From sequence record LR756502.1: DNA of 64,000 nt; one strand, 5' to 3'. The position numbers and the translations under genes were made by a program. The notes under the pieces are model-generated. The model searched no databases and was not told where the DNA came from. It worked only from the letters and a program-made list of their open reading frames with translations. The stretch's first letter is position 1. The number at the start of each line of letters is the position of its first letter. This document shows, one piece after another, positions 5,853 through 55,673 of this stretch.

Positions 5853-7391
5853 TTGTTAGTCGATACACAATATTTAACAAATAGTAAGCGATTGGTTGTA
5901 AGCTATGTTGATAAGACTGGTGATATAAAGCTCAAGTATTATGAGTGGGAAAATCCCATGAAATATATTACATGTGAGGACAATGATAAAGAAAAACACC
6001 CACAGTTTAGATCTTGGGATGGAAAATCTGTTAAACAAATTGAAGTAAATCATCCAGATAGATATGCTATTTATGAGTTTCTTGATTCTCTGCCTGAATC
6101 AGAAAGAGAAGAAATATTCGAATTTAATCTACCAAAAACATATTTTATTGATATAGAAACAGAGATAGTTGATGGGTTTCCAGAGGCTGCTGATGTTAAA
6201 GATGCTTTGGGTAATGTTATAAAAGAGGGAGCTTGTACAAAAGTTTTATCTGTATCAATTGTATATGATGATAAGATTATATTACTTGGATTAAAAGACA
6301 TGCCTGACGATATGCAGGAAAGAATACGTGTAAATACAAATAAATATTTTGAAAAATATAAATCGGATTATAAATTCAAGTACATAAAGTATGAGGATGA
6401 GTTTGATATGTTGTATGCTTTCTTCTACAAGATGGTCCCTAAAATGCCATTGATAACTGGGTGGAACTTCCTTAACTATGACTGGTTATATCTTGTTAAT
6501 CGTTCTAGAAAGATAAGTAAGTTTGTAAATGGTAGAGAATATAAAATAGATCCTGCAGTTTCTTCTTTAACAAAAAGACTTAATAAGATATGGTCTACTG
6601 AATTTGAAGTACCTGCTCATAGAATGATATTTGATTACATGCAGTTATATGAAGTGTGTGATACATCCATTAAGGTTAAGGAATCATCATCACTTGACTT
6701 CGTTTCTAGTAAGCTTGTTGGTGTTGAGAAGATTAAGTACACTGGATCATTACAGAAATTATATGAGGATGACTTTGAAACATTTATGTACTATAACGCG
6801 GTCGATTCGGTCTTAGTTCAAAAGATACATGAGTCCAGAAATTATATATCAATTATATATGCGATATCCGCCTTGGCTAAAATAAGAATTGTTGATGTTG
6901 TTTCTCAGATGAATAATGCTCTTGGATCACTCGCAATAACTGAGGGAGTTCTTCGAAATAGATTTAGGGAAATGGATAATATAGTTCTATTTAAGGGTGA
7001 AAAGTCTGATGGTGAAGCTACAATTGCTGGTGGTTGGGTTAAAGACCCGATTGTTGGTATGAATCAATGGTGTGTTACTTATGACTTTGCCTCACTTTAC
7101 CCAACCACACAAAGGCAATTTTTTATTGCTCCAGAAACATTTATTGGTGTTCGTGATGTTAAAAATCCTGAGTATTGTGATAACGGAAGAAAGATAGAAT
7201 TGGATAAGCATGTTATTTGTGTTAATGGTGTTGTCTTTGAAAAGAGACTATCTCCAACTTTAAGAATGCTTGAGGATGTCTATGCTGATAGAAAGAGGAA
7301 TAAAAATATTATGATGGATAAGAAGGATGAGCTTAAGAAGATAGAGGATGAAATTAAATCTATGGAACTTGAGCTAAATGGTTCTATTTAA
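5853..7391 (+). CDS. Family B DNA polymerase, N-terminal subunit (3'-5' exonuclease plus motif A) of a split enzyme
   Basis: TTG start; ExoI FIDIETE, ExoII GWNFLNYD, ExoIII YNAVD, motif A YDFASLYP; stops in the fingers before KxxxNSxYG and YGDTDS. Confidence 0.88.
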   Translation: MLVDTQYLTNSKRLVVSYVDKTGDIKLKYYEWENPMKYITCEDNDKEKHPQFRSWDGKSVKQIEVNHPDRYAIYEFLDSLPESEREEIFEFNLPKTYFIDIETEIVDGFPEAADVKDALGNVIKEGACTKVLSVSIVYDDKIILLGLKDMPDDMQERIRVNTNKYFEKYKSDYKFKYIKYEDEFDMLYAFFYKMVPKMPLITGWNFLNYDWLYLVNRSRKISKFVNGREYKIDPAVSSLTKRLNKIWSTEFEVPAHRMIFDYMQLYEVCDTSIKVKESSSLDFVSSKLVGVEKIKYTGSLQKLYEDDFETFMYYNAVDSVLVQKIHESRNYISIIYAISALAKIRIVDVVSQMNNALGSLAITEGVLRNRFREMDNIVLFKGEKSDGEATIAGGWVKDPIVGMNQWCVTYDFASLYPTTQRQFFIAPETFIGVRDVKNPEYCDNGRKIELDKHVICVNGVVFEKRLSPTLRMLEDVYADRKRNKNIMMDKKDELKKIEDEIKSMELELNGSI

Positions 7392-8037
7392 CTTTTGTCA
7401 CTGTAAACTCTATATCTGGTAATTCTTTTTTAACAATTCTCTCAACTCTATTTACAACCTTTGAGTTATCATCAAAAAAGTGTGCCTTTTTGAATCCAGT
7501 CTCTCTTATTAAATCTACAATTTTGTAACCTTTCCAAAGCCCTGGATTGCCAGATCCTTTACCGGCTGGAAACATATGTAGTCCATATTTTGGCTTTTCT
7601 AACCCAAGAGACTCCATAGTTTCCCCTACTTTCTCTCTCATATCTTCTGGTCTAGCCGTTACAATACATTTATCTTCAACATCATTATACATTTTTGATA
7701 GATCCTTTACTTTTTTTGGTAGACTTATATCAGTGAATGGAAATCTATGTGGTGTTAGTAGATATACCCTTTTATTTTTCCTTTTCCAATTTCCAATTAT
7801 ATTTAGTTTAAATTCTGGATCTTCAACATAAAGCCTGCCATTCTCCCACTTAATATCCGATAGCTTGGATCCTATCCTATCCACTGATATTTGTAGCATG
7901 TCTTTTATAGTTATGTTTTCTTTAAGAAACTCAATTGATAATTCCTCAAATGTTGGTGTCTTAACAAGTGTTTCATCAAAATCAAATATGTATAAGATAT
8001 CTGACTTAAAGCTTTCAAATTTTTTAATCCTCATCAT
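7384..8037 (-). CDS. HAD-superfamily phosphatase, CTS-like N-terminus
   Basis: MMRIKKFESF; YIFDFDETL, VTAR, HFFDD; start placed at the MMR codons rather than 8049. Confidence 0.75.
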   Translation of the reverse strand: MMRIKKFESFKSDILYIFDFDETLVKTPTFEELSIEFLKENITIKDMLQISVDRIGSKLSDIKWENGRLYVEDPEFKLNIIGNWKRKNKRVYLLTPHRFPFTDISLPKKVKDLSKMYNDVEDKCIVTARPEDMREKVGETMESLGLEKPKYGLHMFPAGKGSGNPGLWKGYKIVDLIRETGFKKAHFFDDNSKVVNRVERIVKKELPDIEFTVTKVK

Positions 8038-8209
8038 TGAATAATTCATTTATAATATTTGTATATCCGACTCCAAATCTTTCTATGCACATACTATATA
8101 TTTCATCCTTATCCTCAATTCCTTCGATAATAATCGATTCTATGTATTTCTCAACGTCGCTACTGTCAGAATATATTCCAAAATCATCATAATCTATTAT
8201 AATATTCAT
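8024..8209 (-). CDS. Small acidic hypothetical protein
   Basis: TAATATATA at 8230-8238; overlaps downstream gene start. Confidence 0.65.
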   Translation of the reverse strand: MNIIIDYDDFGIYSDSSDVEKYIESIIIEGIEDKDEIYSMCIERFGVGYTNIINELFNDED

Positions 8210-8229
8210 TATTTTTCCTTATTTTTAAT

Positions 8230-8238
8230 TATATATTA
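8230..8238 (-). promoter_or_regulatory. Putative late promoter TAATATATA
   Basis: Upstream of 8209. Confidence 0.65.
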
Positions 8239-8300
8239 TAAAAAACCACACAAAATTCTAATTTTCCAAACAAAGTTGAATTATTTGATATAATTTTCAT

Positions 8301-9968
8301 ATGTCATTAAAAACAGATTTAGCCTTATATAAGCCACGAAAAGAACAAAAAGAAGCAATGAGTTTTATTGACTCTGAGTGGAAGCGTGATAAAACAAACA
8401 AATTTTTCCTACTTGATCTGCCTGTTGGTGTTGGTAAATCACACTTAGCTCTTATGATTGCTGATTGGTATCAAAAGAATGTTAGCAAGATGGCAAAGGT
8501 GGATATTATTACAAACAGTAAGCTTTTACAAGACCAGTACGCCGATACATATAGTTCTATTAATGATTTAAAAGGTAAAGAGAATTATGAATGTGAGACC
8601 TACTCTTGCTCTTGTGCGCAGGGTGCTGAGTTTAGTAGACTAAATAAGACGAATTGTGAATCCTGTCCTTATTCTGGAGCTCGTGAGTCATTTATTGCTG
8701 GTAATATATCACTAACTAATTTCTATCTTTATATATTATATGCTATCTATACACCTAAACTTCTTGAGTCAAGAGGAGCTAAAGTGCTTATAGTAGATGA
8801 ATCACATGAGTTTGATGATGTTATTTCCGACTTTGTTTCAATAAAAATAACTGAAAATACAATAAAGAGACTTAAGTTTTCAAATGAATCAGAAGTTATA
8901 AAGAAGTTCAAGTCGGTAAGTTCAATTAATGACTATGTTTCATTTCTAACATTTATTTCCGGTGAGATTATATCAACTATGGATGGTATGGAAAAAGGAC
9001 TTGGGTCACAATCTAGAAATGCTAGATCTGACCAAAGAGACCTTAAAATATCAAAGATACTTAAGGTTAAGAATACCGATATTAAGATAATGCAAAATAT
9101 AACTGACTTAAAACAAAATCAGTTAAAGATTGATATTTTCTTAAAAGAGTATAAGTCTAATCCAAATAACTGGGTACTTGAAACCGGATATAATGAGAAG
9201 TTAAAACAGAAGGAGTTATCGTTGGAGCCAATTTGGGCATATGACTACTTGGATAAGTATGTATTTAGTAACTATGATATGGTTTTTCTTATGTCTGGTA
9301 CAATTCTCGATAAGAATTTATTTTGTCAATTAAATGGTCTAGATGTTACAAAGGCTGTTTACTATTCGATAAGATCCCCATTTCCTGTTAAAAATAGGCC
9401 AATATATTATATGCCTGTTGGAAAAATGAGTTATAAGTTGAAAGAGGAAACATTCAAGAAATATATTCCTTATATAAATAAAATATTGACTAAGTATAAA
9501 AACCAAAAAGGTATTATACATACTAATTCTTTTGAGTTGGCTAACTGGATAAAGAAATCAATAAATGATCCAAGGTTGATCTTTCATGATTCATCAAATA
9601 AAGATGAGATGTTGAAGATGCATTTTGATTCAGAAGAACCAACTGTTATTGTTAGTCCTAGTATGGATACTGGTGTGTCTTTTGATCACGAGAGAAGTAG
9701 ATTTCAAATAATAGCGAAGATTCCCTATCCTAGTCTTGGCTCACAAAAGAATAAACTAAGGCAGAAAAATAATCCTGAGTGGTATCAGTGGAAGACTGTC
9801 ACTGGTATAGTTCAGATGACTGGTAGATCTGTTAGGTCTGAGACTGATTGGGCTGATACTATTATAATAGATGGATCTTTTTCGGATGTTATTAGATATA
9901 GTGGTCATCTTATACCAGACTGGATACAAGATGCTATATCAAAAGTAAATGTAAAAGAAAAGGCATAA
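8301..9968 (+). CDS. DinG/XPD-like SF2 helicase
   Basis: DLPVGVGKS, KGKENYEC plus Cys cluster, VDESH, MSGTI, QMTGRSVRS. Confidence 0.88.
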   Translation: MSLKTDLALYKPRKEQKEAMSFIDSEWKRDKTNKFFLLDLPVGVGKSHLALMIADWYQKNVSKMAKVDIITNSKLLQDQYADTYSSINDLKGKENYECETYSCSCAQGAEFSRLNKTNCESCPYSGARESFIAGNISLTNFYLYILYAIYTPKLLESRGAKVLIVDESHEFDDVISDFVSIKITENTIKRLKFSNESEVIKKFKSVSSINDYVSFLTFISGEIISTMDGMEKGLGSQSRNARSDQRDLKISKILKVKNTDIKIMQNITDLKQNQLKIDIFLKEYKSNPNNWVLETGYNEKLKQKELSLEPIWAYDYLDKYVFSNYDMVFLMSGTILDKNLFCQLNGLDVTKAVYYSIRSPFPVKNRPIYYMPVGKMSYKLKEETFKKYIPYINKILTKYKNQKGIIHTNSFELANWIKKSINDPRLIFHDSSNKDEMLKMHFDSEEPTVIVSPSMDTGVSFDHERSRFQIIAKIPYPSLGSQKNKLRQKNNPEWYQWKTVTGIVQMTGRSVRSETDWADTIIIDGSFSDVIRYSGHLIPDWIQDAISKVNVKEKA

Positions 9969-10004
9969 AAAAACCCACCAAATGGTGGGTTTTTTTATGC
10001 CTTT
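9959..10004. terminator. Bidirectional intrinsic terminator
   Basis: Perfect 22-bp inverted repeat AAAGGCATAAAAAAACCCACCA-AA-TGGTGGGTTTTTTTATGCCTTT between convergent genes. Confidence 0.9.
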
Positions 10005-10416
10005 ACTTTTGTTTCTTTAATATTGCTTTTTGCATTGCTTCTGGAAGTTTCTTTTGACCAGCCGTTAAACCTTTTTTAGGTTCTTTCTTTTCAGCTTTTT
10101 TATCGTCCTTTTTATCTTCTTTCTTACCTTTTTTCTCGAAGTTAAATTTTTTCTTTTCAACCACTTCATCTCCCCATGTCTTTCTTCTAACCGGTTTATT
10201 CTCTTCTTCCTCTTCTTCCTCCTCTGGCTTGCAAGCTGGACAACCATCAGTTCCACAAGGACACTCTTCTTCCTTGAATTCATTATCTAGTCCGTCATTC
10301 TCTTCTCCTTTTACGTGGTTTAACCAATCTTGCTCATCTGAGTCAGTTTTAGTAAATCTCCCAGCATCTTCTGAGTCGGAAAAATTTTCAAATGTTTTTA
10401 GGTATCTTAATTTCAT
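10003..10416 (-). CDS. Acidic/basic low-complexity protein, CTS-like N-terminus
   Basis: MKLRYLKTFENFSD; E-rich middle, K-rich end GLTAGQKKLPEAMQKAILKKQK. Confidence 0.75.
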   Translation of the reverse strand: MKLRYLKTFENFSDSEDAGRFTKTDSDEQDWLNHVKGEENDGLDNEFKEEECPCGTDGCPACKPEEEEEEEENKPVRRKTWGDEVVEKKKFNFEKKGKKEDKKDDKKAEKKEPKKGLTAGQKKLPEAMQKAILKKQK

Positions 10417-10440
10417 ATGGTTATAATTATTTTCTTAACA

Positions 10441-10449
10441 TATATATTA
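10441..10449 (-). promoter_or_regulatory. Putative late promoter TAATATATA
   Basis: Upstream of 10416. Confidence 0.7.
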
Positions 10450-10517
10450 ATGTCCAAACATAGAAATGTATATTTTATATAATACTTTACTAAAAATGTA
10501 AAATACATTGTTAGAAA

Positions 10518-10526
10518 TAATATATA
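10518..10526 (+). promoter_or_regulatory. Putative late promoter TAATATATA
   Basis: 4 nt before ATG 10531. Confidence 0.7.
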
Positions 10527-10530
10527 GTTT

Positions 10531-11313
10531 ATGAAAATACAGAGGTATAACGAACACTCATTATATTTATCAATGAGTGAGTATTTTATCGAATCATTGC
10601 AGTCTATTATTACTGAGTCTGAGAGCACTTCAAAGTATAAGGATATAGAGAAGAAAGTTATAAAGGATCTAAAGCTAAACCTTTCTATAGTTGGTACATT
10701 TGGTGCTGGTATATCTGTTATGTATCCAATTGTTGAGAAACTGGTTAGTAATATGGAGATCAATATTGATATCACCCCATCCAAGATTGTGTTATTGACA
10801 TTGGCCGCATTTTCAATTATTTACCTGGAAGAGAAAAAATCAAAGTTAGATTCCGACAAAGAGGCTGTTTTAAGAAAAGATTGTCAATCTATGTTAGAGG
10901 AGCTAAAAATGTCTGGAATTGGAAATGGTATTGTTAAGAAATTAATTGATGGATTTAAATCTATAAAGAATATATTTTCTCTAATAGGAAAGCATGCTGG
11001 TGCTATTGTTGGTGGATTTATTGATATGTTTGCATATGCATCCTTAGCAATGCCGATATTAAATGGTGTATTGGTGATTGTTGGTAAGTATGATTTGACA
11101 TTGGATAGTTTACCTGGTAATTTTCTTGGGTTAGCAACTGGTGTTGGTACAATAATTGCTAAACATGGAATAAGTGATATATTAAATAGAATGAAAGGAA
11201 AACTTCCATTCAATAAGAATAAAGTCATTGACGAAATCGATACTCCGATTATACAGAAGTTTGGTGACGCCGATATTGAACAAGACGGAAATTTAATCAA
11301 GGAAGAGCAGTAA
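10531..11313 (+). CDS. Hypothetical protein with hydrophobic segments, CTS-like N-terminus
   Basis: MKIQRYNE; TAATATATA 4 nt before ATG. Confidence 0.75.
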   Translation: MKIQRYNEHSLYLSMSEYFIESLQSIITESESTSKYKDIEKKVIKDLKLNLSIVGTFGAGISVMYPIVEKLVSNMEINIDITPSKIVLLTLAAFSIIYLEEKKSKLDSDKEAVLRKDCQSMLEELKMSGIGNGIVKKLIDGFKSIKNIFSLIGKHAGAIVGGFIDMFAYASLAMPILNGVLVIVGKYDLTLDSLPGNFLGLATGVGTIIAKHGISDILNRMKGKLPFNKNKVIDEIDTPIIQKFGDADIEQDGNLIKEEQ

Positions 11314-11398
11314 TTATATTGTATATTACCATATACGCTGAATATATAATAAACTTAACTTAATCAATTTATATAATAATAAAAAGTGAAAGTATTAC

Positions 11399-12733
11399 AT
11401 GACTCCCCAATTAGAGAAGGTATTTTTTAATTACGTACTGCGAACAAAGAAATTCTTCGAAATAGTTAAACCTTATTTTTTCAGAAACTCAGAGATACAA
11501 TTTGTATATGGTGTTGTTCGTGAATATATGATCAAACATAATGATGCTCCAATACCTACTGCTCGCCAAATATTGGATATGGTATCTCTCGAAGATAAAG
11601 AGGGTATAATAACAAAGGATATATTAAAATCAATACTGCAAGTAGACCTAAAGGAATATGATGAGAAAAATTTTATAGAGCCTAAATTTAATGCTTGGGT
11701 ATTGTCAAATAGACTTAAAACAGGAACTGTTGATATAATCGATGAGACAAGAAATCTTGATAACATATCCGACTTTGAAAAGGCTGTTGAGGCAGCAAAT
11801 AGAATAAAGGGTATTGTTGATGAGATGTCAAGTACAAATTTTATACAAGGTGATGATATGGGATCTGATTTTGATGATGCCGAGAGTCACGTACAGGATT
11901 CCTCTAAGTTTAAGGTTAAGTCTGGATTTGAGACACTGGACCATATGCTTGGTGGTGGTTGGGATATACAGACACTTAATGTTATAATGGCTGAGACTAA
12001 CAATGGTAAATCATTGTGGATGCAAAACTTTGCATATAAGGCAGCTGATATGGGATATAATGTTCTATATATTTCACTTGAAATGAGTGAGAGAAAGGTT
12101 ATGAAAAGAATCGGGGCAATGAGATTAAAAATTCCAATTAATGACTACGATAACGCTTCTAAGGATATTGAAATGATAAGGAAGAGGATTCAATCTTTGG
12201 GTAGTTCTTCTGGGGTAGGTAGTGATTTATTTTCTAAAAAAATTGGAAAGATATATGCTAAGTTTTGGGCAGCTGGTACGGCCACTGTTGGTGACTTTGA
12301 TAATTATATACAAGCATTAAAAGAAAAGAAGGATATAAAAGTTGACCTTGTAATTGTTGATTATATTACACTTGTTGCTGCTGTTAAAGGATCAATGTCT
12401 GATAACCTTTATACAAAAGGTAAGCATTTAGCCGAAGGATTAAGAGCGGTTGGTGCTAAATACAAGGTACCGGTTATAACAGGTGTTCAGGTTGCGAAAG
12501 ATGCCTGGAACTCAGCTGATATAACACTGGAAAGTGTGCCTGAGTCAAAAGCTATAGCTGAGACTGCTGATACATTTTTTGCCATAATAAGAACTGAGGA
12601 AATGAAGAGACAGAATATGTTTAGATTTAAGCTACTTAAACAAAGAGATGGTGATTTTTTAAAATCACAAGTTAAATTGACTCTAAACCCTACATACTTA
12701 ACATTGGAGAATGATCAGTTCCTAGATACCTAA
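11399..12733 (+). CDS. Replicative DNA helicase (T4 gp41/DnaB-like)
   Basis: AETNNGKS Walker A, YISLEMSE, VIVDYI, VITGVQ, ESKAIAETAD, LKQRDG. Confidence 0.9.
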   Translation: MTPQLEKVFFNYVLRTKKFFEIVKPYFFRNSEIQFVYGVVREYMIKHNDAPIPTARQILDMVSLEDKEGIITKDILKSILQVDLKEYDEKNFIEPKFNAWVLSNRLKTGTVDIIDETRNLDNISDFEKAVEAANRIKGIVDEMSSTNFIQGDDMGSDFDDAESHVQDSSKFKVKSGFETLDHMLGGGWDIQTLNVIMAETNNGKSLWMQNFAYKAADMGYNVLYISLEMSERKVMKRIGAMRLKIPINDYDNASKDIEMIRKRIQSLGSSSGVGSDLFSKKIGKIYAKFWAAGTATVGDFDNYIQALKEKKDIKVDLVIVDYITLVAAVKGSMSDNLYTKGKHLAEGLRAVGAKYKVPVITGVQVAKDAWNSADITLESVPESKAIAETADTFFAIIRTEEMKRQNMFRFKLLKQRDGDFLKSQVKLTLNPTYLTLENDQFLDT

Positions 12734-12779
12734 AACAAAGAATATTTAATTTATATAAAATAAAAAATAAAATCTCTTT

Positions 12780-13748
12780 ATGAGTAAAAAAAATGTCAAA
12801 GATGACGAAGATTTTGATGATGAAACAGAACAAACTACCGATGAGTCGGTTGATGATTATCAAGAAGATGATGAAGAAGTAGAAGTGGAAGAGTCAACTT
12901 CAGAAATAAGCAAGATAAGTGATGATGATGATATGGAACTTGTAATTGAGATAGATGAAGGTGATTTGGATATAACTGACCCAAGTAATGAGGTAGTTGT
13001 TAAGACTGAAGATACTGAATCCGAATCTGAAGAGATAGTATTATCAAAACATAAGATACAAGGAAAGCATACTTTAAAGTATGATTCTATTTTCAAGGGT
13101 AAAAAAGATGAACCATTGGATGAGGAAGATCCAGATGCGGCTTCTATGTACTATAAGGAAAGCATTGAAGTTGATAAATCATCTAACTACTACTTTGAGT
13201 CTATTGACAATGAGCACTATATTAGAGCTAAATTAGTTAAAGAAAGAGTTTATGCTATCCTTAGTGAAAATACAAACCTTAACTTCCTAAACAATAGGAG
13301 AAAGCCATCAAGGGTTGATTTTAATAACTATTATATGTTGTTGAGGACCAATCTACAGGAGGAAAGTTTTACAAATGTTGAGTTGTTCAATGAGCTATCA
13401 GTATATTTTTCCGATAATCTATTTAATATGTTCAAGTTATTGGAAAATAAGTGGAGAAATATGATAATATCTGAGCTCCAAGAACATATTGGTAAATCAA
13501 AAACAGATAAAGAAATTAAAAACAGAAATATCTATATTGGTACAGAGATAGAATTTACATGGATGGATGGTGAAGAGGAATTATCTATAACTGGTGTCGT
13601 TGTTGATGCTGATTATCAATTATCAACATTCAAAGTGGATTCATATGAAAACCTCTATGATGTAGATATATTAAATGTCACAAAGATATTAAACAATTCA
13701 AAATTTAAATATAATTTAAATAAGCTTAACAATATTGACTTCTTATAA
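12780..13748 (+). CDS. Hypothetical protein with strongly acidic N-terminal half
   Basis: 322 aa; D/E-rich first ~90 aa. Confidence 0.8.
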   Translation: MSKKNVKDDEDFDDETEQTTDESVDDYQEDDEEVEVEESTSEISKISDDDDMELVIEIDEGDLDITDPSNEVVVKTEDTESESEEIVLSKHKIQGKHTLKYDSIFKGKKDEPLDEEDPDAASMYYKESIEVDKSSNYYFESIDNEHYIRAKLVKERVYAILSENTNLNFLNNRRKPSRVDFNNYYMLLRTNLQEESFTNVELFNELSVYFSDNLFNMFKLLENKWRNMIISELQEHIGKSKTDKEIKNRNIYIGTEIEFTWMDGEEELSITGVVVDADYQLSTFKVDSYENLYDVDILNVTKILNNSKFKYNLNKLNNIDFL

Positions 13749-13843
13749 AAAGTTTTAATATTTATTTTAAAATTTCTAAAAAAAGAAAGATTTAGTTTCA
13801 ATATTGAAAATACGATACGATATATAAAATACAAAAAATTAAA

Positions 13844-16396
13844 ATGAGCATGATTAAAGTAACGAAAAGAAATGGCAAAAAAGAGCCAGTGATGTTGGAT
13901 AAGATATTAGAAAGAATCAATCAACAAACTTATGGGTTGGATCAAAAATGGGTAGTTCCATTTGAAATTGCTCAAAAAGTTATTGAGGGAATAACCCCTG
14001 ATATTAAGACATATGTATTAGACCAGTTAGCTATGGAAACTGCAGCTGCTCTTACAACTAAACACCCAGACTATTCCGTTCTTGCGGCTAGGTTGGCAAT
14101 TACAAATTTACATAAAGAGACAAAGAAGAGCTTTTCAGAGACTGTTGAGGATCTTTATAGATATGTTGATCCAAATACAGGAAGACTATCTCCTATTGTA
14201 TCTGAGGAATTCTATTCAATTGTTAAAAAACATGCTGATGATTTAGACTCAGCGATTGTTCACTCAAGAGATCATAATTTTGATTACTTTGGATTTAAGA
14301 CACTTGAGAAATCATACCTTTTGAAATTAAATGGACTTGTTGCGGAAAGACCGCAATATATGTATATGAGAACAGCTCTACAGATATGGAAAGATGATAT
14401 ATCAAAGGTTATTGAAACTTATAATTTATTATCTGAGGGATATTATACTCATGCTACACCAACTCTATTTAACTCTGGTACAACAAGGCCACAACTATCA
14501 TCTTGTTTTTTATTAGATGTTGAGAGTGATTCAATTGAAGGTATATTTAATACTCTTAAGGAATCCGCTCAAATTTCTAAAAATGCTGGTGGTATCGGTA
14601 TCTCATTTGGTAAAGTTAGAGCTAAGGGTACATATATTGCTGGTACAAATGGAACATCTAATGGTATTATTCCTTTTTTGAAGATTTTCAATGAAACTGC
14701 TAGAGCAGTTGATCAAGGTGGTGGTAAACGCAAAGGGTCCATAGCTATCTACATGGAACCTTGGCACGCTGACGTATTTGACTTTCTTGACCTTCGTAAA
14801 AATCAAGGTAAAGAGGAGTTGAGAGCTAGAGATCTTTTCCTAGCTATGTGGACAAATGATTTATTTATGGAGAGAGTTGAGTTGGATGCTGATTGGTCAC
14901 TTATGTGTCCTCATGAGTGTGTTGGGTTAACTGAGACATATGGTAAAGAGTTTCGTGATCTATATGAGGGATATGAAAAAATTGGTAAATTTAAAAAGGT
15001 TGTTAAGGCTAGAGATGTTTGGAATAAAATATTAGAATCCCAAATTGAAACAGGAACTCCTTATATTCTATATAAAGATGCTATAAATGAAAAATCAAAC
15101 CAATCAAACATTGGTGTTATTAGATCATCTAATTTATGCGCTGAGATTGTTGAAGCTACTGGTATTACTAAGTCTCAAGGTGAGATTCTTAAGAATAAAG
15201 AGTTACTTGATAAATTAGGACTTAGTGAGTTCTATGGTGAGGAGTTTGTTAATGAAACAGCTGTGTGTAACTTGGCTTCAATTGCTCTACCTAAATTTAT
15301 AAATAAAAATAAAACATATAACTTCAATAAGCTATATGACGTTGCATATTCTGCTATTATTAACCTTAATAATGTTATTGATGTTAATTATTATCCATCC
15401 GCTGGTGCTAAATTTTCAAACCTTTGTCATCGACCAGTTGGTCTGGGTGTACAAGGTCTAGCTGATGTATTTTTTGTCAATGGTTTGGCATATGAATCAG
15501 AAGAGGCTAAATTATTAAATAAGGAAATATTTGAAACTATATACTACGCGTCTATGAGAGCATCTTGTGACCTAGCTAAGGAACAAGGATCATATGCAAC
15601 ATATGAGGGATCTCCTATATCACAAGGTAAATTTCAATTTGACTTGTGGGGAGTTAAAACCACAAAGAGATGGGATTGGGACAAGCTAAGAGAAGATATT
15701 AAGAAGTATGGTGTTAGAAATTCATTAACAACTTGTATCATGCCGACAGCTTCAACCGCTTCAATACTTGGTAATGAGGCTTCTTGTGAGGGACAAACTT
15801 CAAATATGTATACTAGAAGAGTATTGTCTGGTGAGTTTATACTTGTTAATAAGTATCTTGTTAAGGAGTTGATTAAGCTTGGTGTTTGGAATGACTCAAT
15901 CAGAAAGAAGATTATAAATGAGAATGGATCTGTTCAAAATATACCCGAGATACCAACCAATTTGAAAGAGGTTTATAAGACAGTGTATGAAATTAAACAA
16001 AAGGATGTTATTGATATGGCGTCTGATAGAGGAGCATTCATTGATCAAACACAATCGATGAATATATTCATGGACTCTCCTAACTTTGCTAAGTTAACTT
16101 CGATGCACTTTTATGGTTGGGGTAGAAGAAATATATTAAACGATACTGAAGGAAATCCTGTAATCCCACAGGGTGATGGTGTTGATGTAATATATGATAA
16201 AGATGGTAAAGCTAGATGTTATAGAGATAAAAAGGTATCATTAAAAACTGGTATATACTATTTGAGAAATAAATCTACTGCTGATGCTGTTAAGTTTACT
16301 GTTCAAGAAGAAGTTAAAAAAACAGTTGAAGAACAACTTGCTGAAATATCTTGTAGTCTGGATAATCCTGATGATTGTTTGGCTTGTGGATCGTAA
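13844..16396 (+). CDS. nrdA: Ribonucleoside-diphosphate reductase class Ia, large subunit
   Basis: ATP-cone VTKRNG, THATPTLFNSGT, QLSSCFL, SSNLCAE, C-terminal CSLDNPDDCLACGS. Confidence 0.97.
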   Translation: MSMIKVTKRNGKKEPVMLDKILERINQQTYGLDQKWVVPFEIAQKVIEGITPDIKTYVLDQLAMETAAALTTKHPDYSVLAARLAITNLHKETKKSFSETVEDLYRYVDPNTGRLSPIVSEEFYSIVKKHADDLDSAIVHSRDHNFDYFGFKTLEKSYLLKLNGLVAERPQYMYMRTALQIWKDDISKVIETYNLLSEGYYTHATPTLFNSGTTRPQLSSCFLLDVESDSIEGIFNTLKESAQISKNAGGIGISFGKVRAKGTYIAGTNGTSNGIIPFLKIFNETARAVDQGGGKRKGSIAIYMEPWHADVFDFLDLRKNQGKEELRARDLFLAMWTNDLFMERVELDADWSLMCPHECVGLTETYGKEFRDLYEGYEKIGKFKKVVKARDVWNKILESQIETGTPYILYKDAINEKSNQSNIGVIRSSNLCAEIVEATGITKSQGEILKNKELLDKLGLSEFYGEEFVNETAVCNLASIALPKFINKNKTYNFNKLYDVAYSAIINLNNVIDVNYYPSAGAKFSNLCHRPVGLGVQGLADVFFVNGLAYESEEAKLLNKEIFETIYYASMRASCDLAKEQGSYATYEGSPISQGKFQFDLWGVKTTKRWDWDKLREDIKKYGVRNSLTTCIMPTASTASILGNEASCEGQTSNMYTRRVLSGEFILVNKYLVKELIKLGVWNDSIRKKIINENGSVQNIPEIPTNLKEVYKTVYEIKQKDVIDMASDRGAFIDQTQSMNIFMDSPNFAKLTSMHFYGWGRRNILNDTEGNPVIPQGDGVDVIYDKDGKARCYRDKKVSLKTGIYYLRNKSTADAVKFTVQEEVKKTVEEQLAEISCSLDNPDDCLACGS

Positions 16397-34385: not shown

Positions 34386-36248
34386 ATGGGTATATTTAAG
34401 TATAATCAATTTATAGGAAAACCACTTACTGAGAATCTACAAGGGGCTAAAAAGCTAATGAAGGATAGATATTTGATGCTAAAATCAATAAAAGATCTAA
34501 ACCTTTTGACTGGTAAATTAAAACAGGAGTGGGATGATGGTGAAAGAAGATCATTTTCTCTTAAGGACTTTACCGAGGATCAACAAGATCTTATTAAGGC
34601 TAAATTCAGAGAGATAAAACTAACTGATGAAGAGGCTAGAAATATTGAAAAAGATCCTGGATTTATTAAGATAAGAGAGCTTGTAAAAGATACTTTGGGT
34701 TGGTGTTATATCTTTACATATTTCTACTATGTAGAAAATGTGCCATTTGAGGAACTAGAAGATATTTACAAGAAGTTGTTGGATTTTAGACCATTGTTGA
34801 GTAGATTACCTAAACCATTGGATAATAATTTCATAAATCCTAATATCAAAAATAACAATGAGGTTCTAGTTGATGAGTTGGAGAAAATTAACAGATATAG
34901 AAAGCTTAAGAGGTTTGTTGATGAACTTCCTGGTGATATGAGGAGAGAATTTGCTTCAACTTCAGAGCTTTATAAAGGAAAAATTGAGGATATAGCTGTT
35001 GCATTTGACGAGTTTGGTAAAAATGCAGAGACTGGTGTTGTTGATGAAAAAGAAAAATCTACACTACAAAAGTTATTCTTCTCTAAGATTAAAAGATATA
35101 AAGTTTTAAGAGAGGTTATACCACAAGCAGAGAACTATATTAAAGGATTGGATAATAAGAATGTTGTTAAATTCTATAAGGTAATTGAGAAGTGTAATGA
35201 AATGTTTGGTATTGTTGGTGCTGATATAGTATTTGATGAAAATGGTATACTAATACTTGATATTAAATCTTTCCAAGCTAATAAGATGTTAAATTCTAAT
35301 ACATCACATTGTATAGCTTCATATGATGGACATTGGTCCAGTTATGTTGGTACTGAGCAAGATAACAAATTTAATAAGCAATACTATATCTATAACTTTA
35401 ACTTATCATCTTCCGATAATAAGTCTATTATTGGTATAACAATTGAGCCAAATCAAAGAATAAATGCTTGTCATCTTAAAAATGACGCAGGATTTAGTGG
35501 TGATATAAGAAACTGCCTAAAGGGATGGGAAAGACAATATGATATAAAGGAAGATCTTTGGACTGTATTATCCCCTATGTCTGATGAAGACATAGCTAAG
35601 AAAAAGAGAAGAATTGCTGCTAATAGAGAAATCATAAAACCAAAAATAAAGTTGGATGAGATTCAAAAGTTGGTTAGAGAAGAAGGAGCTGATGTTAATA
35701 GAGAAAATGGTAAGCCATTGTTGAACGCTGTTCAGGAAGGAAGCTATGATAAGGTTAAATATCTACTAGAACTTGGAGCATCTCCTAATTTGAGACAAAA
35801 AGCAGAAGCAGTTATTAACCAAGCCAAGGACCTTGAAATGATTAAACTTTTGGTTAATAAGGGAGCTGAGTTGACGAGTCAAGTATTTAAGAATATTATG
35901 GAAGATAATTCAGCTGTTGAATATTGTTTACAAGCTGGTATGGATCCTAACTTTGAGAACTCATTGCCAGTAAGAACTTGTTGTAAACAAGGTAGTCTAG
36001 ATACACTTAAGTTACTTATTAAGTATGGTGCCCAAATTAAACATGCTAGAAATATGCCAATGGCTTGGGCAGCTGAGAATAATAGAAAGGACTTTATGGA
36101 GTATATGATAGGACTCGGTGTTGATACTGGATTCAGTTCTATAAAGAAATGGATTAGTCACACTACTAAGTTTGCTAAACCAGAAGATAAGAAAGAAATG
36201 ATGGACTATATAGATAAACTTATAGATTCAAAAAAAGTAACTGCGTAA
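34386..36248 (+). CDS. Ankyrin-repeat protein, CTS-like N-terminus
   Basis: GADVNRENGKPLLNAVQEGSYDKVKYLLELGASPN and further ankyrin-like units; central SHCIA motif. Confidence 0.8.
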   Translation: MGIFKYNQFIGKPLTENLQGAKKLMKDRYLMLKSIKDLNLLTGKLKQEWDDGERRSFSLKDFTEDQQDLIKAKFREIKLTDEEARNIEKDPGFIKIRELVKDTLGWCYIFTYFYYVENVPFEELEDIYKKLLDFRPLLSRLPKPLDNNFINPNIKNNNEVLVDELEKINRYRKLKRFVDELPGDMRREFASTSELYKGKIEDIAVAFDEFGKNAETGVVDEKEKSTLQKLFFSKIKRYKVLREVIPQAENYIKGLDNKNVVKFYKVIEKCNEMFGIVGADIVFDENGILILDIKSFQANKMLNSNTSHCIASYDGHWSSYVGTEQDNKFNKQYYIYNFNLSSSDNKSIIGITIEPNQRINACHLKNDAGFSGDIRNCLKGWERQYDIKEDLWTVLSPMSDEDIAKKKRRIAANREIIKPKIKLDEIQKLVREEGADVNRENGKPLLNAVQEGSYDKVKYLLELGASPNLRQKAEAVINQAKDLEMIKLLVNKGAELTSQVFKNIMEDNSAVEYCLQAGMDPNFENSLPVRTCCKQGSLDTLKLLIKYGAQIKHARNMPMAWAAENNRKDFMEYMIGLGVDTGFSSIKKWISHTTKFAKPEDKKEMMDYIDKLIDSKKVTA

Positions 36249-39775: not shown

Positions 39776-41002
39776 TTAGCTGAATATGTCTTCAGCATCT
39801 GCACTATCAACAAATCCGTCATTATCTTCATCGTCATCCATAATCTCACTGAACTTCTTTTCTACTTCCTCGATCTCATCTAGTGATTTGAATCTGAAAT
39901 AGTCATTTACAATTGGCTCCATTTTCTTAAGAACCTCCATTGTAAATACTTCTTGTTTGAATAGTTGCTTTGTCGGTACTGACTTATTTAAGTGATTAAC
40001 ATACCAACGATTTCCACCTGGTATAAATGTCATTTCGCCTGTTTTTTTATCAACATCCATTTTACCACAAGCGATTCCAATTTGATCGAAATACTCTGGT
40101 CTACAGAAAGCATCTAGTCCTGTATATGGGTTCATACCGTTTGCAAATGAAATCTCAAATCTAATCTTCTTAGGCTTGGCCATACGATTTTTTGCTGTTT
40201 TGAAAAGAACTGATATTCCACTAGCTCCTAAATCCATATCATCTTCGTCTCCTGTCTTTAACTTTGACTTACTCATGAATCCAATTACTGACGCTGAGTA
40301 TAACAATCCATTACCACCCTTTAACTTCTCAGTTGGGTATAGATCAAGAGAAAGATATGTATGGTTACAAACTATCATAGGTATATCAAGGAATCCAAGA
40401 TCAGTATTGATGCTTCTAAATAGTGATCCTAATGCTTTCGCCTTGGTCATATCTTGTTTAATATCTCCTTTTAATAAGTCATTCTTTTCTTTATTTGATG
40501 CCATCTGTCCAAGAGAATCCAATACAATCATTAGTTTAGGTAGCTCAAATCCGGCCATCTTTTGTTGCTTTAATTCATCTACTAACTGTGATAGAACCAT
40601 GTTAACATCTTCTACTTTATTAGATCTAATTAATCTAAATTTATCTAGAGAATTATCTATTCCAAATTTTGGTAAGTCTTCCAAATCTACTGCTTGTTCT
40701 GTGTCAATGTAGATAACAGAATATCCATCCTTCTGAGCATGTTTTGAAACTGAATAAGCTATAAATGACTTCCCTGCTCCTGACTCACCAGCGAATGCTG
40801 TAATTCTGTTTGTTGCAACTCCGCCTTTTAGTAATCTTCCTGATAGAGCAGCATCTAATAGATATACCCCTGTTGTGATAAACTTTTTCTCTCTAATTAC
40901 CTTTTCAATTTGAATTGGTACTGTCTTTGCAATATTATCCAAAATAGAACCAATTTTAGAAAATTCAAACTTTTTGACATCTTTTTTAACTTCTTTAGCC
41001 AT
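39776..41002 (-). CDS. uvsX: UvsX/RecA-like recombinase
   Basis: ITTG..LDAALSG, AGESGAGKS, YIDTE, VLDSLG, DMTKAK, CNHTY, GGNGLLYSAS. Confidence 0.92.
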   Translation of the reverse strand: MAKEVKKDVKKFEFSKIGSILDNIAKTVPIQIEKVIREKKFITTGVYLLDAALSGRLLKGGVATNRITAFAGESGAGKSFIAYSVSKHAQKDGYSVIYIDTEQAVDLEDLPKFGIDNSLDKFRLIRSNKVEDVNMVLSQLVDELKQQKMAGFELPKLMIVLDSLGQMASNKEKNDLLKGDIKQDMTKAKALGSLFRSINTDLGFLDIPMIVCNHTYLSLDLYPTEKLKGGNGLLYSASVIGFMSKSKLKTGDEDDMDLGASGISVLFKTAKNRMAKPKKIRFEISFANGMNPYTGLDAFCRPEYFDQIGIACGKMDVDKKTGEMTFIPGGNRWYVNHLNKSVPTKQLFKQEVFTMEVLKKMEPIVNDYFRFKSLDEIEEVEKKFSEIMDDDEDNDGFVDSADAEDIFS

Positions 41003-46950: not shown

Positions 46951-46959
46951 TAATATATA
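46951..46959 (+). promoter_or_regulatory. Putative late promoter TAATATATA
   Basis: 4 nt before ATG 46964. Confidence 0.7.
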
Positions 46960-46963
46960 GTTT

Positions 46964-47446
46964 ATGATTAAATTTTCAAATATGATAAATGAGGATAAAT
47001 CTAGTTCTAAGTTTAAGCTAGGATTGGATCTGCATGGTGTGGTTGATTCAATGCCAAAGGAGTTTTCATTTTTAACAAATGCTATAGTTTCTGCTGGTGG
47101 TGAAGTTCACATATTGACTGGTGGATCCTGGACTGAAGAACTAGAAGGTCAAATAAAATCATATGGTATAGTTTGGACCAATCATCTATCTGTATATGAT
47201 TATCTAATTGAAACTGGAGCAGAGACTACTGGTGAGATTCAATTTCCTGATGGAACCATACAAAAGAAATTTAATGATGGTGCTTGGGACAAGATCAAAG
47301 CTGATTATTGTAGGGATAATAAAATATCACTACACATTGATGATACATTAATATATAATGACTTCTTTACAACCCCTTTCGCTAGGTTGTGGACACACAG
47401 TAATAACCCAAAAGCTCCTCACAAGGACGTTAGACACTTAGATTAA
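46964..47446 (+). CDS. HAD-like (5'-nucleotidase-type) protein, CTS-like N-terminus
   Basis: MIKFSNMINE; LGLDLHGVVD, ILTG, LHIDD. Confidence 0.65.
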   Translation: MIKFSNMINEDKSSSKFKLGLDLHGVVDSMPKEFSFLTNAIVSAGGEVHILTGGSWTEELEGQIKSYGIVWTNHLSVYDYLIETGAETTGEIQFPDGTIQKKFNDGAWDKIKADYCRDNKISLHIDDTLIYNDFFTTPFARLWTHSNNPKAPHKDVRHLD

Positions 47447-47448
47447 TT

Positions 47449-47922
47449 ATGACAATTAAAAAATGGTTTGATTACAACCAACCTGACAAATTAAAAGTGT
47501 CTGGTGGTATAGTTCTTATTTTAAATGGGACCAAGATTTTACTCGCCCATCCAACAAAAAGTAAGTGGTATGAAACATATTCTGTCCCTAAGGGTGGTGT
47601 TGATGATGGGGAATCTGAGATGGATGCTGCTATAAGAGAAATACGAGAAGAGACTTCACTTATTGTAACAAAGGATATGATAGTAAATCCAGATGATCCA
47701 ATTATTATAAATTATAAGAACAAGGCTGGTATAACATATAAAAAACTGGTATTGTATAAAATTTATATAAATAATATTGGTGAGGTTGGTATGACTTCAG
47801 AAATCTTGGATAAGAGTAATCTACAACTTAGGGAAGTTGATTGGTGTGGTTTTCTTGATAAGAAGGAAGCGCAGTTGAGAATATTTCATAGGATGGTTAG
47901 TCTATTGGATCTAATAGACTAA
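47449..47922 (+). CDS. Nudix hydrolase
   Basis: PKGGVDDGESEMDAAIREIREETSL Nudix box. Confidence 0.9.
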   Translation: MTIKKWFDYNQPDKLKVSGGIVLILNGTKILLAHPTKSKWYETYSVPKGGVDDGESEMDAAIREIREETSLIVTKDMIVNPDDPIIINYKNKAGITYKKLVLYKIYINNIGEVGMTSEILDKSNLQLREVDWCGFLDKKEAQLRIFHRMVSLLDLID

Positions 47923-49471: not shown

Positions 49472-50113
49472 ATGATGAACTACGACTCTTATAGATACAT
49501 CTATCCACCACGTCCAAAAAATGCAATACCATCTGATGAATTATCTGTTTGGGATAATGATACACTCATAGGTCAACCAAAATTAAATGGATCTAACTGC
49601 GTTATTTTCACTAATGGTGAAAGATTCAGAGTAATGAATAGACATGATCAAACATTAACCAACTTTCGTATAAATACTGATGAAATACTTAATATATACA
49701 AGTGTAAGAAAGGTGAATGGATGGCTATCAATGGTGAATATATGAATAAGTCCAAAATGGATGAGAGTGGTAAGGTTTTTAACCACAAGTTTGTTATTTT
49801 TGACATCCTTGTTCAGGATTCTAAATATTTGGTTGGTAGTACGTTTGAGGATAGAATACTTCTAATGGATGATCTTTATAATACCAAAGATTCTGATAAG
49901 GATTATCTTTATGAGATTTCTGAAAACATCTACCGAGTTAAATCGTATAATAACAACTTTAAATTTATTTTCGATAAATTAACACCAATTGATATGATTG
50001 AGGGTTTGGTTATGAAAAGAAAGAATGCTAAATTGGAGCTTGGATCTACTGAGAATAATAATATTAAGTCTCAGATTAAATGTAGGAAGGCTACTAAAAA
50101 TTATAAATACTAA
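49472..50113 (+). CDS. ATP-dependent ligase-type nucleotidyltransferase (adenylation domain only)
   Basis: Motif I QPKLNGS, III INGEY, IIIa VIFDIL, IV EGLVMK, V IKCRK. Confidence 0.8.
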   Translation: MMNYDSYRYIYPPRPKNAIPSDELSVWDNDTLIGQPKLNGSNCVIFTNGERFRVMNRHDQTLTNFRINTDEILNIYKCKKGEWMAINGEYMNKSKMDESGKVFNHKFVIFDILVQDSKYLVGSTFEDRILLMDDLYNTKDSDKDYLYEISENIYRVKSYNNNFKFIFDKLTPIDMIEGLVMKRKNAKLELGSTENNNIKSQIKCRKATKNYKY

Positions 50114-50419: not shown

Positions 50420-50992
50420 GTGGAAAAATTCTCCAAATTAAAACCAAAAGATGAATTCTCTGATAGTAAAGATGAAGTCTTATATACTGATAATAATATA
50501 AAAATTGTAAGCTATGAAGATTGGTCGGTTATAGAAGAGAAAGATACAATTGTTTGTATACCATATCTAATAGAGACGAATCAAATTATTCTAAGATATG
50601 AATATATACCTCCTTTTAAGATGGCCGATGGTCAAGAGTTTCATATAACTGTTCTAAGTGGTAGTGTTGATAGAGGAGAGTCAAAGGAGAGATGCCTACT
50701 TAGAGAATTAGAAGAGGAAGCTGGAATAATATTGAGAGATGGATTTAACATAGAGTTTATGAATCCTTTGTTCAAGACAAAGGCACATAATAACAAATAC
50801 TATCCTTGTATTATTACACTATCTGAGAGTGATTACCATGAGGTTATGGCTAAAGGTGATGGTACTAATGCTGAAGGTTTGAGTAAGTCAGTTAAGGTTG
50901 ATGTTAAGCACCTTAACTCACTGAATCCATCAGATCTAATAACAGACTACATGTTGGGTAAAGTTAAAAAGTATATAAATCAAAATCAATAA
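50420..50992 (+). CDS. Nudix hydrolase (ADP-ribose pyrophosphatase-like)
   Basis: GTG start; SGSVDRGESKERCLLRELEEEAG. Confidence 0.82.
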   Translation: MEKFSKLKPKDEFSDSKDEVLYTDNNIKIVSYEDWSVIEEKDTIVCIPYLIETNQIILRYEYIPPFKMADGQEFHITVLSGSVDRGESKERCLLRELEEEAGIILRDGFNIEFMNPLFKTKAHNNKYYPCIITLSESDYHEVMAKGDGTNAEGLSKSVKVDVKHLNSLNPSDLITDYMLGKVKKYINQNQ

Positions 50993-50993
50993 A

Positions 50994-51017
50994 AAAAGAG
51001 ACCAAATGGTCTCTTTT
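50994..51017. terminator. Bidirectional intrinsic terminator
   Basis: AAAAGAGACCA-AA-TGGTCTCTTTT. Confidence 0.85.
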
Positions 51018-51042
51018 CTTTTTATAGCTGTTCGTGCTTTAA

Positions 51043-52107
51043 TTAAATTTTTGAAAGTAATTCCGACTTCTTAGTATTAAACTCATCATCTGTTAAGATA
51101 CCGGCTGAATGTAAATCAGCTAGTTTTTTAATAAGTTCAATAACATCATCAGATTCTCTCACTAGGATATCCTTTAGGTTTATTTCCCCGGTCTTTTTAT
51201 TAACAATATCTTTTGTTTCAACTGGCTTTCTACTATTTGGAAGTATCTGTAAAATTGTACTTGAAATATAGTTAGTATCAAAGTCCATATCTATCTCACT
51301 GAATACTTGTGAAGACGATTCTCCTTTTTCAACTCTACCTGTTTCAATGGATGAAATCGGAGTTGTGTTTGAGATATTTTGGAAGGAATTACCAGTATTA
51401 TTTATTGTCAATCCACTTAAGTCTACTCCAGAAGTATATGAACAATTAACAGAGTCCGATGAATACATAGATGTGTTGTATGTTCCTGTTGTTGTGGATA
51501 AGGAACTTAACCCACCACTTATAGTAGTTGTGCAATTTCCATTAGATAAGGAACTTAACCCACCACTTATAGTAGTTGTGCAATTTCCATTAAATATACC
51601 AGAAGTACTACTTCCACAAGTAATAATTGTTCTATATGGGTAGTAATGATTGTAATAAGGGTAATAGTCATAATGATGAACATGTACAACCTTATTGAAC
51701 TTTTCTTGCCAGTTATGAATTGTCACAACTGATTCTTTATAGAAGAATACTTCTAATAATCCGTTGTTTGTAGTGGCATCCGCCGATTCAATAGTGTTTT
51801 CTACCTCATAGGTGCTGAAGATAAACTTCTTTTTATCATCTACAAAGCAGTCAAGATAGAATCTTTGACCTGGTTTAAGTACTAGTCCAGTTTTAGAAAT
51901 GGATTGTCCATTAAGTTTAATATCACACAACACACACTCTTTAAGTGGATTATACAACTCGATTTCGAACTCTTGTTCGTCATCTAAGTAAACTTTACCT
52001 TTTTTGATTGATTTTCTTCCTTTATCGGAAGGTTTTGATTTGTCTTGTTGATTGTTTACAACAATGAACGCTTCGGGCTTTGCCGAGCTTGTAGTTTTTG
52101 CTACCAT
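51043..52107 (-). CDS. Hypothetical protein with low-complexity S/T/G linker and C-terminal SHOCT domain
   Basis: Start moved to MVAKTTSS; FEIELYNP, GLVLKPGQR, IETGRVEKG; IELIKKLADLHSAGILTDDEFNTKKSELL. Confidence 0.8.
   Translation of the reverse strand: MVAKTTSSAKPEAFIVVNNQQDKSKPSDKGRKSIKKGKVYLDDEQEFEIELYNPLKECVLCDIKLNGQSISKTGLVLKPGQRFYLDCFVDDKKKFIFSTYEVENTIESADATTNNGLLEVFFYKESVVTIHNWQEKFNKVVHVHHYDYYPYYNHYYPYRTIITCGSSTSGIFNGNCTTTISGGLSSLSNGNCTTTISGGLSSLSTTTGTYNTSMYSSDSVNCSYTSGVDLSGLTINNTGNSFQNISNTTPISSIETGRVEKGESSSQVFSEIDMDFDTNYISSTILQILPNSRKPVETKDIVNKKTGEINLKDILVRESDDVIELIKKLADLHSAGILTDDEFNTKKSELLSKI
51497..51592. repeat. Perfect 48-bp tandem duplication
   Basis: GATAAGGAACTTAACCCACCACTTATAGTAGTTGTGCAATTTCCATTA x2 (NGNCTTTISGGLSSLS). 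Confidence 0.95.
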
Positions 52108-52237
52108 AGTAATTCTTTTTATTTTTATCCTACATCTTTGAGTCTTATTCAAACTCTCAACGATATCCTAAAGATACCCGACATAAGTTAGCGAACAGCT
52201 ATAAACTATATATCAAGGTTATATTGGTCCCTTTTTA

Positions 52238-54863: not shown

Positions 54864-55673
54864 CAAACCATTTTGAAATTTGTACTTTTCATATCTATCA
54901 ACTAAGTCTATTAGAAATTTATTTCTAACAATATCACTAACTCCAAATTTATGGCTATAGATATCATTGAGTGGTCTCTTGTAGTTTTGTTGGCTTTTTG
55001 TTCCGTCATCTTCTCTAAACTCATAGTCTCCAGTTGTGATTGATATAAAATCTAAAAACTTTGAGTCTCTCTTCTTAATATCATATTGTGAGATATCTCC
55101 CATCATTATAGCTTTTGAATTTTTACCTAGACGAGTTGACCAAAGCATTAGTTGATGCATTGTGCAATTTTGAGCCTCATCTAATAACATAAGTGATTCA
55201 TCATATGTAGTGCCTCTCATATACGCAAGTGGTTCAACAACAACTTCACCTATTGATTTCATAAACTCAAATGATTGTTTACCAACTATTTTCTGAAATG
55301 TAGTGAAGTAGGATTGCATATATGGATCAGTCTTTTCCTCAATAGTTCCTGGTAGAAATCCCAAACTTTCACCACTTTCCTGTATAGGTTTTGTTAATAC
55401 AATTCTTTCAATTTTCTTATCAGCAAGAAGTCCAATTGCCGCATAACAAGCAACAAATGTTTTGGCTGTTCCAGCAGGTCCTTGGCAAATTGTTAGGGTA
55501 TTGTTTCTAATTCCTTTATATAGTTCCTCCTGATTGGGACTTAAAGTTATAATAGTTTTTATTTTTTCCCATTCTTGCTTTGTTACTCCAGATTTACGAG
55601 GTGTTTTATTCTTATTAAACTCTTCAACACCGTTCTCAATCTCTCTTTGGTTTCGTTGTTTTTCTCTGCTCAT
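54861..55673 (-). CDS. phoH: PhoH-like ATPase
   Basis: GPAGTAKT, GFLPG, LAYMRGTT, LDEAQN, GDISQYD. Confidence 0.93.
   Translation of the reverse strand: MSREKQRNQREIENGVEEFNKNKTPRKSGVTKQEWEKIKTIITLSPNQEELYKGIRNNTLTICQGPAGTAKTFVACYAAIGLLADKKIERIVLTKPIQESGESLGFLPGTIEEKTDPYMQSYFTTFQKIVGKQSFEFMKSIGEVVVEPLAYMRGTTYDESLMLLDEAQNCTMHQLMLWSTRLGKNSKAIMMGDISQYDIKKRDSKFLDFISITTGDYEFREDDGTKSQQNYKRPLNDIYSHKFGVSDIVRNKFLIDLVDRYEKYKFQNGL

Follow-up and report, generated by a model that had tools for sequence, protein, structure and literature searches.

Base pairing between the two untranslated ends of a bacterial-type mRNA is known from only a handful of single-species cases based on mutagenesis. In the hbs mRNA of Bacillus subtilis, a long-range duplex of ~14 bp between the 5' UTR and the 3' UTR of a short monocistronic transcript with a structured leader modulates RNase Y cleavage and shields the leader from ribonuclease attack (Braun, Durand & Condon 2017, PMC5737220). 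In the icaR mRNA of Staphylococcus aureus, the 3' UTR pairs with the 5' UTR of the same mRNA, masks the Shine-Dalgarno sequence and triggers RNase III cleavage, and hence acts repressively (Ruiz de los Mozos 2013, PMC3868564). Pairing of distant termini is also found in RNA viruses, where the flavivirus 5'-3' CS and the panhandles of bunyaviruses and influenza viruses are conserved by covariation with lineage-specific sequences at fixed positions and serve genome replication by a viral RNA polymerase. The flanks of 16S and 23S rRNA pair across more than 1 kb into stems longer than 20 bp that are cleaved to release the mature RNA. At the DNA level, short inverted repeats bracket the invertible segments of the Hin/Gin/Cin systems and of Bacteroides invertons, which lie between regulatory signals.

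The locus described here lies in a window of 64,000 nucleotides from the 642-kb uncultured phage LR756502.1, one of the Mahaphage-clade genomes over 634 kb that are predicted to infect Bacteroidetes (PMC7162821). A perfect 14-bp inverted repeat, consisting of TTTATAGCTGTTCG at 51021-51034 and its exact reverse complement at 52192-52205, flanks a minus-strand gene of 354 aa (ATG 52107 to stop 51043) with a C-terminal SHOCT domain (Pfam, E=4e-7). The right copy directly follows a TATATAG box (52212-52206, minus strand), whereas the left copy begins 8 nt after the stop codon and abuts an intrinsic terminator hairpin with A-tract and U-tract (50991-51020), which has a 13-pair stem, is bidirectional and also ends the convergent NUDIX gene. 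The repeat reported in the preliminary description is confirmed. That description had proposed either a pairing of the mRNA ends into a closed loop, with stabilisation, processing or circularisation as outcomes, or an invertible ON/OFF cassette, and this interpretation is supported only in part: comparative evidence strongly favours the pairing, while the inversion is not supported.

On its own the repeat is not statistically remarkable. In this DNA of 31% GC, four perfect inverted repeat pairs of 14 nt or more within 2 kb were observed against 1.7+-1.3 in Markov-simulated sequence, and the other three (14-15 nt) lie inside ORFs and look accidental. In contrast, a match between the two short UTRs of a single gene is rare, with a chance of about 3e-5 per gene. 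Among 61 genes of the window, the SHOCT gene is the sole outlier, with 14 nt against a maximum of 13 nt in 720 non-cognate 5'/3' pairings, so that bracketing repeats are not a general feature of the genes in this window. Duplex folding of 65x45-nt windows gave a mean of -20.3 kcal/mol for cognate against -13.1 kcal/mol for non-cognate pairs; as it produced cluttered structures with long interior loops, it was used for this comparison only and replaced by an ungapped helix finder. A search for further copies of the arm within the window with 2 or fewer mismatches found none, which speaks against a recurring regulatory site.

The meaning of the repeat emerges from comparison with related loci. 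The closest genome, LR745206.1 (72% nucleotide identity), contains the ortholog with AGCTGTTCG right after a TATATA box and CGAACAGC right before a different terminator hairpin, although the rest of the 3' UTR has diverged. Protein-guided scans yielded 80 loci from IMG/VR and 80 more from JGI metagenomes. In 129 loci with both flanks, from huge-phage genomes, IMG/VR and metagenomes and carrying 69 distinct arm pairs, the best 5'/3' complement lies at the same two places: it starts at a median of 96 nt upstream of the ATG, directly after a TATA-rich box, and 0-20 nt after the stop codon, most often 6-15 nt. A terminator stem, including A-tract/U-tract pairs, begins 0-3 nt after the 3' arm in 26 of the 38 loci in which a hairpin was called. 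A chance match in AT-rich DNA is refuted by this recurrence at the same sites with different sequences. No arms were detected in LR756504, LR756501 and the Lak phages; for the last this is only provisional, as they use another genetic code while ORF ends were placed under code 11, and the leader model described below did not hit them.

The compensatory changes in both arms that had been named beforehand as a check were found. At least seven unrelated arm sequences occur, which differ between lineages but remain complementary, for example AGCTGTTCG, GACCTTGTGGTT/AATCACAAGGTC, GAAACCTTGTTG, a ~22-bp pair with bulges (GGGTGCCTTTCGTAC, GTATTGAAGGGTGCCTTTCGTAC), TCTCACTTTGTT, TATTAATCTTTTTTG, GCCTTTCCCG/CGGGAAGGGT and TATACGTTGACTA. 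In an alignment of 34 distinct arm pairs, 83.5% of the cells form standard pairs, against 47.7+-1.8% after shuffling the 3' letters among sequences (0/500) and 31-48% after sliding the partner. This cross-group alignment was anchored on the helix, which inflates pair counts, but the contrast between cognate and shuffled arms does not depend on the anchoring. In the closest group, aligned by sequence homology, one core pair reads GC 23, GU 5 and AU 4 with none unpaired, and follows the classic path from G-C via G.U to A-U (TAGCTG/CAGCTA, TAGCTG/CAGTTA, TAACTG/CAGTTA). All other one-sided changes in the core except one give G.U. The core is so conserved within this group, however, that covariation there is weak (score 0.128 against 0.100, with 3 of 500 shuffles as high). 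Both arms are lost together in the one lineage lacking the terminator and the 3' arm (loci L014/L024/L045), although the rest of the leader is kept.

Covariation of an inverted repeat is also expected for some DNA-level functions, and inverted repeats covary if they must stay identical. The inverton model could further draw on the position of the repeats, between promoter and gene and between gene and terminator, and on the richness of Bacteroidetes in invertons. Nonetheless, the orientation is the same in all 129 assembled loci, with the outside peptidase gene divergent upstream in 43 of 43 loci, and a look-up of the exact protein for other assemblies that might show a flipped cassette returned only the source genome. 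The arms of orthologous loci are unrelated in sequence, some are only 9-10 bp long and some contain bulges, which is unlike the sites of a conserved recombinase and too short for homologous recombination. No recombinase was found with Pfam and PHROGs among the flanking genes or the 20 larger ORFs of the window, in agreement with the preliminary description, which had seen none. An inversion giving phase variation is hence very unlikely. Two further DNA-level readings, paired operators for a sequence-specific protein that loops the gene and remnants of the terminal inverted repeats of a mobile cassette, appear equally improbable. In their favour, two identical sites in opposite orientation flank one gene, and two extra genes are inserted next to the cassette in LR745206. 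However, the flanks differ (cttttctt and ctatatat) and hence show no target-site duplication, no transposase was seen, and the arms keep fixed positions relative to promoter, leader and terminator in all relatives while their sequences change; a DNA-binding specificity would have had to change at least seven times.

An RNA helix in the sense transcript is favoured by the type of mismatch. Among unique sequences, interior transition mismatches are G.U in the mRNA sense 24 times against 9 for A.C. The G.U states persist across many lineages, whereas A.C and transversion mismatches are mostly singletons or lie at helix ends. This asymmetry is only moderate, since a rough and subjective count of independent events gives about 11 to 3 (p~0.03), and is suggestive only. 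Full-length folding of the predicted 1215-nt transcript pairs nt 1-11 with the 3' arm in both the MFE and the centroid structure, and the core of this helix, here called P0, is present in the MFE structure of 27 of 27 full-length relatives.

The 5' arm is contiguous with a conserved structured leader (52191-52108, minus strand). In the MFE fold it comprises the stem P1 (52187-52180 with 52136-52129), the hairpins P2 (52178-52172 with 52168-52162) and P3 (52156-52151 with 52145-52140) and an A-rich stretch up to the ATG. The preliminary description had noted an unusually long, structured leader of about 95 nt with the pairings GAGUUU/AAGACUC and AUCUUU/AAAGAU; the first is confirmed and covaries, whereas the second is not supported, and a local hairpin GGUAUCU/GGAUAUC and a closing stem CUUAUGUC/GAUGUAGG are predicted instead. 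RNAalifold recovered P2 and P3 with changes on both sides in 8 of 9 pairs. On the cross-group alignment, P3 is 85% paired with 6 of 6 pairs covarying, while P1 and P2 are only 57% paired, so that P1, and with it any stacking on this stem, is only tentatively supported. A covariance model of the leader hits exactly once in the window (52105-52232, minus strand; 67 bits, E=4e-8) and once per related locus, always upstream of this gene family, including loci outside the seed. Rfam gave no relevant hit in the window region even at E<=10, and only tRNAs in 10 related loci at the gathering threshold. A switch in which the 5' arm alternatively pairs near the start codon found no support, since no convincing complement was seen by eye and the MFE fold does not suggest one.

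The position of the RNA 5' end is inferred by analogy with leaderless-like genes that carry the same box. Many genes of the window carry a TATATAR box that often lies 2-4 nt before their ATG, for example those at 10521, 46954 and 42781 (minus strand), which all read TATATAGtttATG. In the related locus L008, two copies of the same promoter context (AAACTTTTCAATATATAA) precede, at the same distance, the ATG of one gene and the A of AGCTGTTCG of the gene under study. The inferred +1 is thus 52202, which gives a leader of 95 nt and an RNA helix that probably contains only 11 of the 14 bp, AUAGCUGUUCG (52202 to 52192) pairing with CGAACAGCUAU, followed by AAA, in the 3' arm. The outer TTT/AAA of the DNA repeat would then lie upstream of the start. 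The promoter role of the box is likewise inferred, and the model requires that transcription does not start downstream of the arm. The label "late-like" given to this promoter in the preliminary description is unsupported, since the same box also precedes replication genes.

The most likely explanation, which we hold with moderate confidence, is that the two arms are the strands of a long-range helix within one monocistronic mRNA. Transcription would start a few bases after the TATATAG box, and the 3' arm, once made about 1.1 kb later and shortly before the polymerase terminates, could pair with the 5' terminus. P0 would then stack between P1 and the terminator stem, leaving both RNA ends next to each other and buried in helices. 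Base-paired 5' termini resist 5'-end-dependent decay (RppH, RNase E/G, RNase J) and structured 3' ends resist exonucleases. By analogy with hbs mRNA, the helix therefore probably protects the ends or marks completed transcripts, such that only these would become stable and well translated, and it may also bring the stop codon close to the leader. While the conservation and covariation of the pairing and its fixed anatomy are established by the sequence comparison, the RNA ends, the presence of both arms in one transcript, any effect on stability, translation or expression, and any processing or covalent circularisation are inferences or guesses from precedents.

The same covariation evidence would apply if the helix acted negatively or as a processing site, cut by RNase III or another double-strand-specific nuclease as in rRNA flanks, lambda sib retroregulation or icaR, so that completed transcripts were trimmed or destroyed. 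P0 spans 9-24 bp (median 13-14 bp, most often 11-16 bp) and P1 8-11 bp; a duplex of about 22 bp, or about two helical turns, would be reached only if both were stacked, or in the sub-group of L016, whose P0 is ~22 bp long. This main rival is considered unlikely, as most helices (9-17 bp) are shorter than typical RNase III substrates and a helix kept only to destroy a gene's own completed mRNA is harder to reconcile with a dedicated promoter, an elaborate leader and a terminator. In contrast to icaR, the 5' arm lies about 85 nt upstream of the start region and does not touch the ribosome-binding region. In contrast to hbs, where the pairing overlaps an internal RNase Y site, the inferred pairing here involves the extreme 5' nucleotide; covariation with interchangeable arm sequences across a wide family, or an arm abutting the terminator stem, is to our knowledge not reported for hbs. 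The viral panhandles differ in serving genome replication, whereas the RNA inferred here is an mRNA of a dsDNA phage, and the rRNA stems in being longer and flanking no ORF.

New is thus an architecture of this type kept by covariation across more than a hundred huge-phage contigs from many environments, predicted to involve the very first nucleotides of the transcript, with an arm abutting the terminator, and accompanied by a previously undescribed structured leader RNA. If confirmed experimentally, it would represent a natural "closed mRNA" design in a prokaryotic virus, a clean and phylogenetically validated model for how end-to-end pairing controls mRNA life or translation, and a new cis-regulatory RNA motif for huge phages, whose gene regulation is essentially unknown. 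In addition, the TATATAR boxes appear to mark transcription starts in these uncultured phages.

A more speculative and improbable, though not excluded, possibility is that the helix serves as a splint. With the 5'-terminal nucleotide paired to the 3' arm and the U-tail of the terminator folded back on the A-tract that begins 0-3 nt further along, the two ends would sit side by side on a continuous duplex, which could be a substrate for end-joining into a covalently circular mRNA, or at least a non-covalent closed loop that hands terminating ribosomes back to the leader. An RNA-ligase-like gene (49472-50113) and the NUDIX gene (50420-50992) lie within 1.6 kb in this phage and its closest relatives, but a functional link to them is weakened by the synteny, which does not extend across the wider family that shares the bracket. 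In the L016-like sub-group, the ~22-bp long-range helix is followed directly by a U-run with no local hairpin and may even serve as the terminator stem, in which case termination would depend on the transcript's own 5' end.

The protein encoded between the arms (51043-52107, minus strand) affiliates in Pfam and PHROGs only with SHOCT and with families of unknown function, and a Foldseek search of the PDB gave no significant match. Autoregulation through the leader is conceivable, but remains a conjecture. AlphaFold2, with an alignment of 43 sequences that left out proteins from GenBank loci, predicted an N-terminal Ig-like beta-sandwich, a long disordered linker rich in Ser/Thr/Asn/Gly, a conserved beta-hairpin (ETGRVEKG...) and C-terminal SHOCT helices, with pLDDT >90 for residues 40-130 and 250-290. 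Most relatives carry a C-terminal zinc ribbon instead of SHOCT. Among the predicted viral structures of BFVD, the protein matched a marine-phage SHOCT protein and, more weakly, uncharacterised proteins of giant eukaryotic viruses.

About 13 genes across the window carry a TATATAR box only 1-5 nt before their ATG, which suggests leaderless mRNAs. Examples are found at 10521-10533(+), 46954-46966(+), 42781-42769(-), 53842(-), 20204(+), 23268(+), 41101(+), 44132(+) and 61103(+). In a second class of genes the box is located 16-25 nt upstream. The 95-nt leader inferred for the gene bracketed by the inverted repeat is the exception. Three other perfect inverted-repeat pairs of 14-15 nt within 2 kb were present in the window (28847/30387, 35882/36697 and 57551/58914). 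All three are AT-rich and lie inside ORFs, and they are probably accidental.

In the 3' UTRs of one sub-group of related loci (designated L016, L017, L018, L025, L144 and L154), the predicted long-range helix is ~22 bp and is followed directly by a T-run with no local terminator hairpin, as if the 5'-3' helix itself served as the terminator stem.

The coding sequence of the bracketed gene (51043-52107) contains a perfect 48-bp tandem duplication at 51497-51592, which repeats 16 amino acid residues (NGNCTTTISGGLSSLS) in the disordered linker. The length of this linker varies widely among relatives. The predicted fold of the protein matched uncharacterised proteins of giant eukaryotic viruses in BFVD with E values of 1e-9 to 1e-5. 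These include proteins from Marseillevirus, Pithovirus, Mimiviridae, nudiviruses and iridoviruses, some of which carry RING domains.

Two NUDIX hydrolase genes and an RNA/DNA-ligase-like gene cluster just beside the bracketed gene (47449-47919, 49472-50113 and 50420-50992). The same NUDIX and ligase genes neighbour it in the closest relatives only. In the close relative LR745206.1 (locus L001, 3566-5473, compared with 50993-51042 in the window), two extra genes encoding proteins of 181 and 458 aa are inserted between the NUDIX gene and the bracketed gene, whereas the bracket and its terminator are intact next to the insertion.

The window as a whole represents a replication and nucleotide-metabolism module (34386-36245, 5958-16393, 39779-41002 and 54864-55673), containing a family-B DNA polymerase, helicases, a DnaB-like helicase, a class I ribonucleotide reductase, a RecA-like protein and PhoH, along with an ankyrin-repeat protein. 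Lastly, a PrkA serine kinase (E=3e-167) and a DUF444 protein (E=6e-147) are encoded side by side in the phage (25831-27753 and 27880-29139, respectively), an arrangement that resembles the bacterial yeaG/yeaH-type pair.
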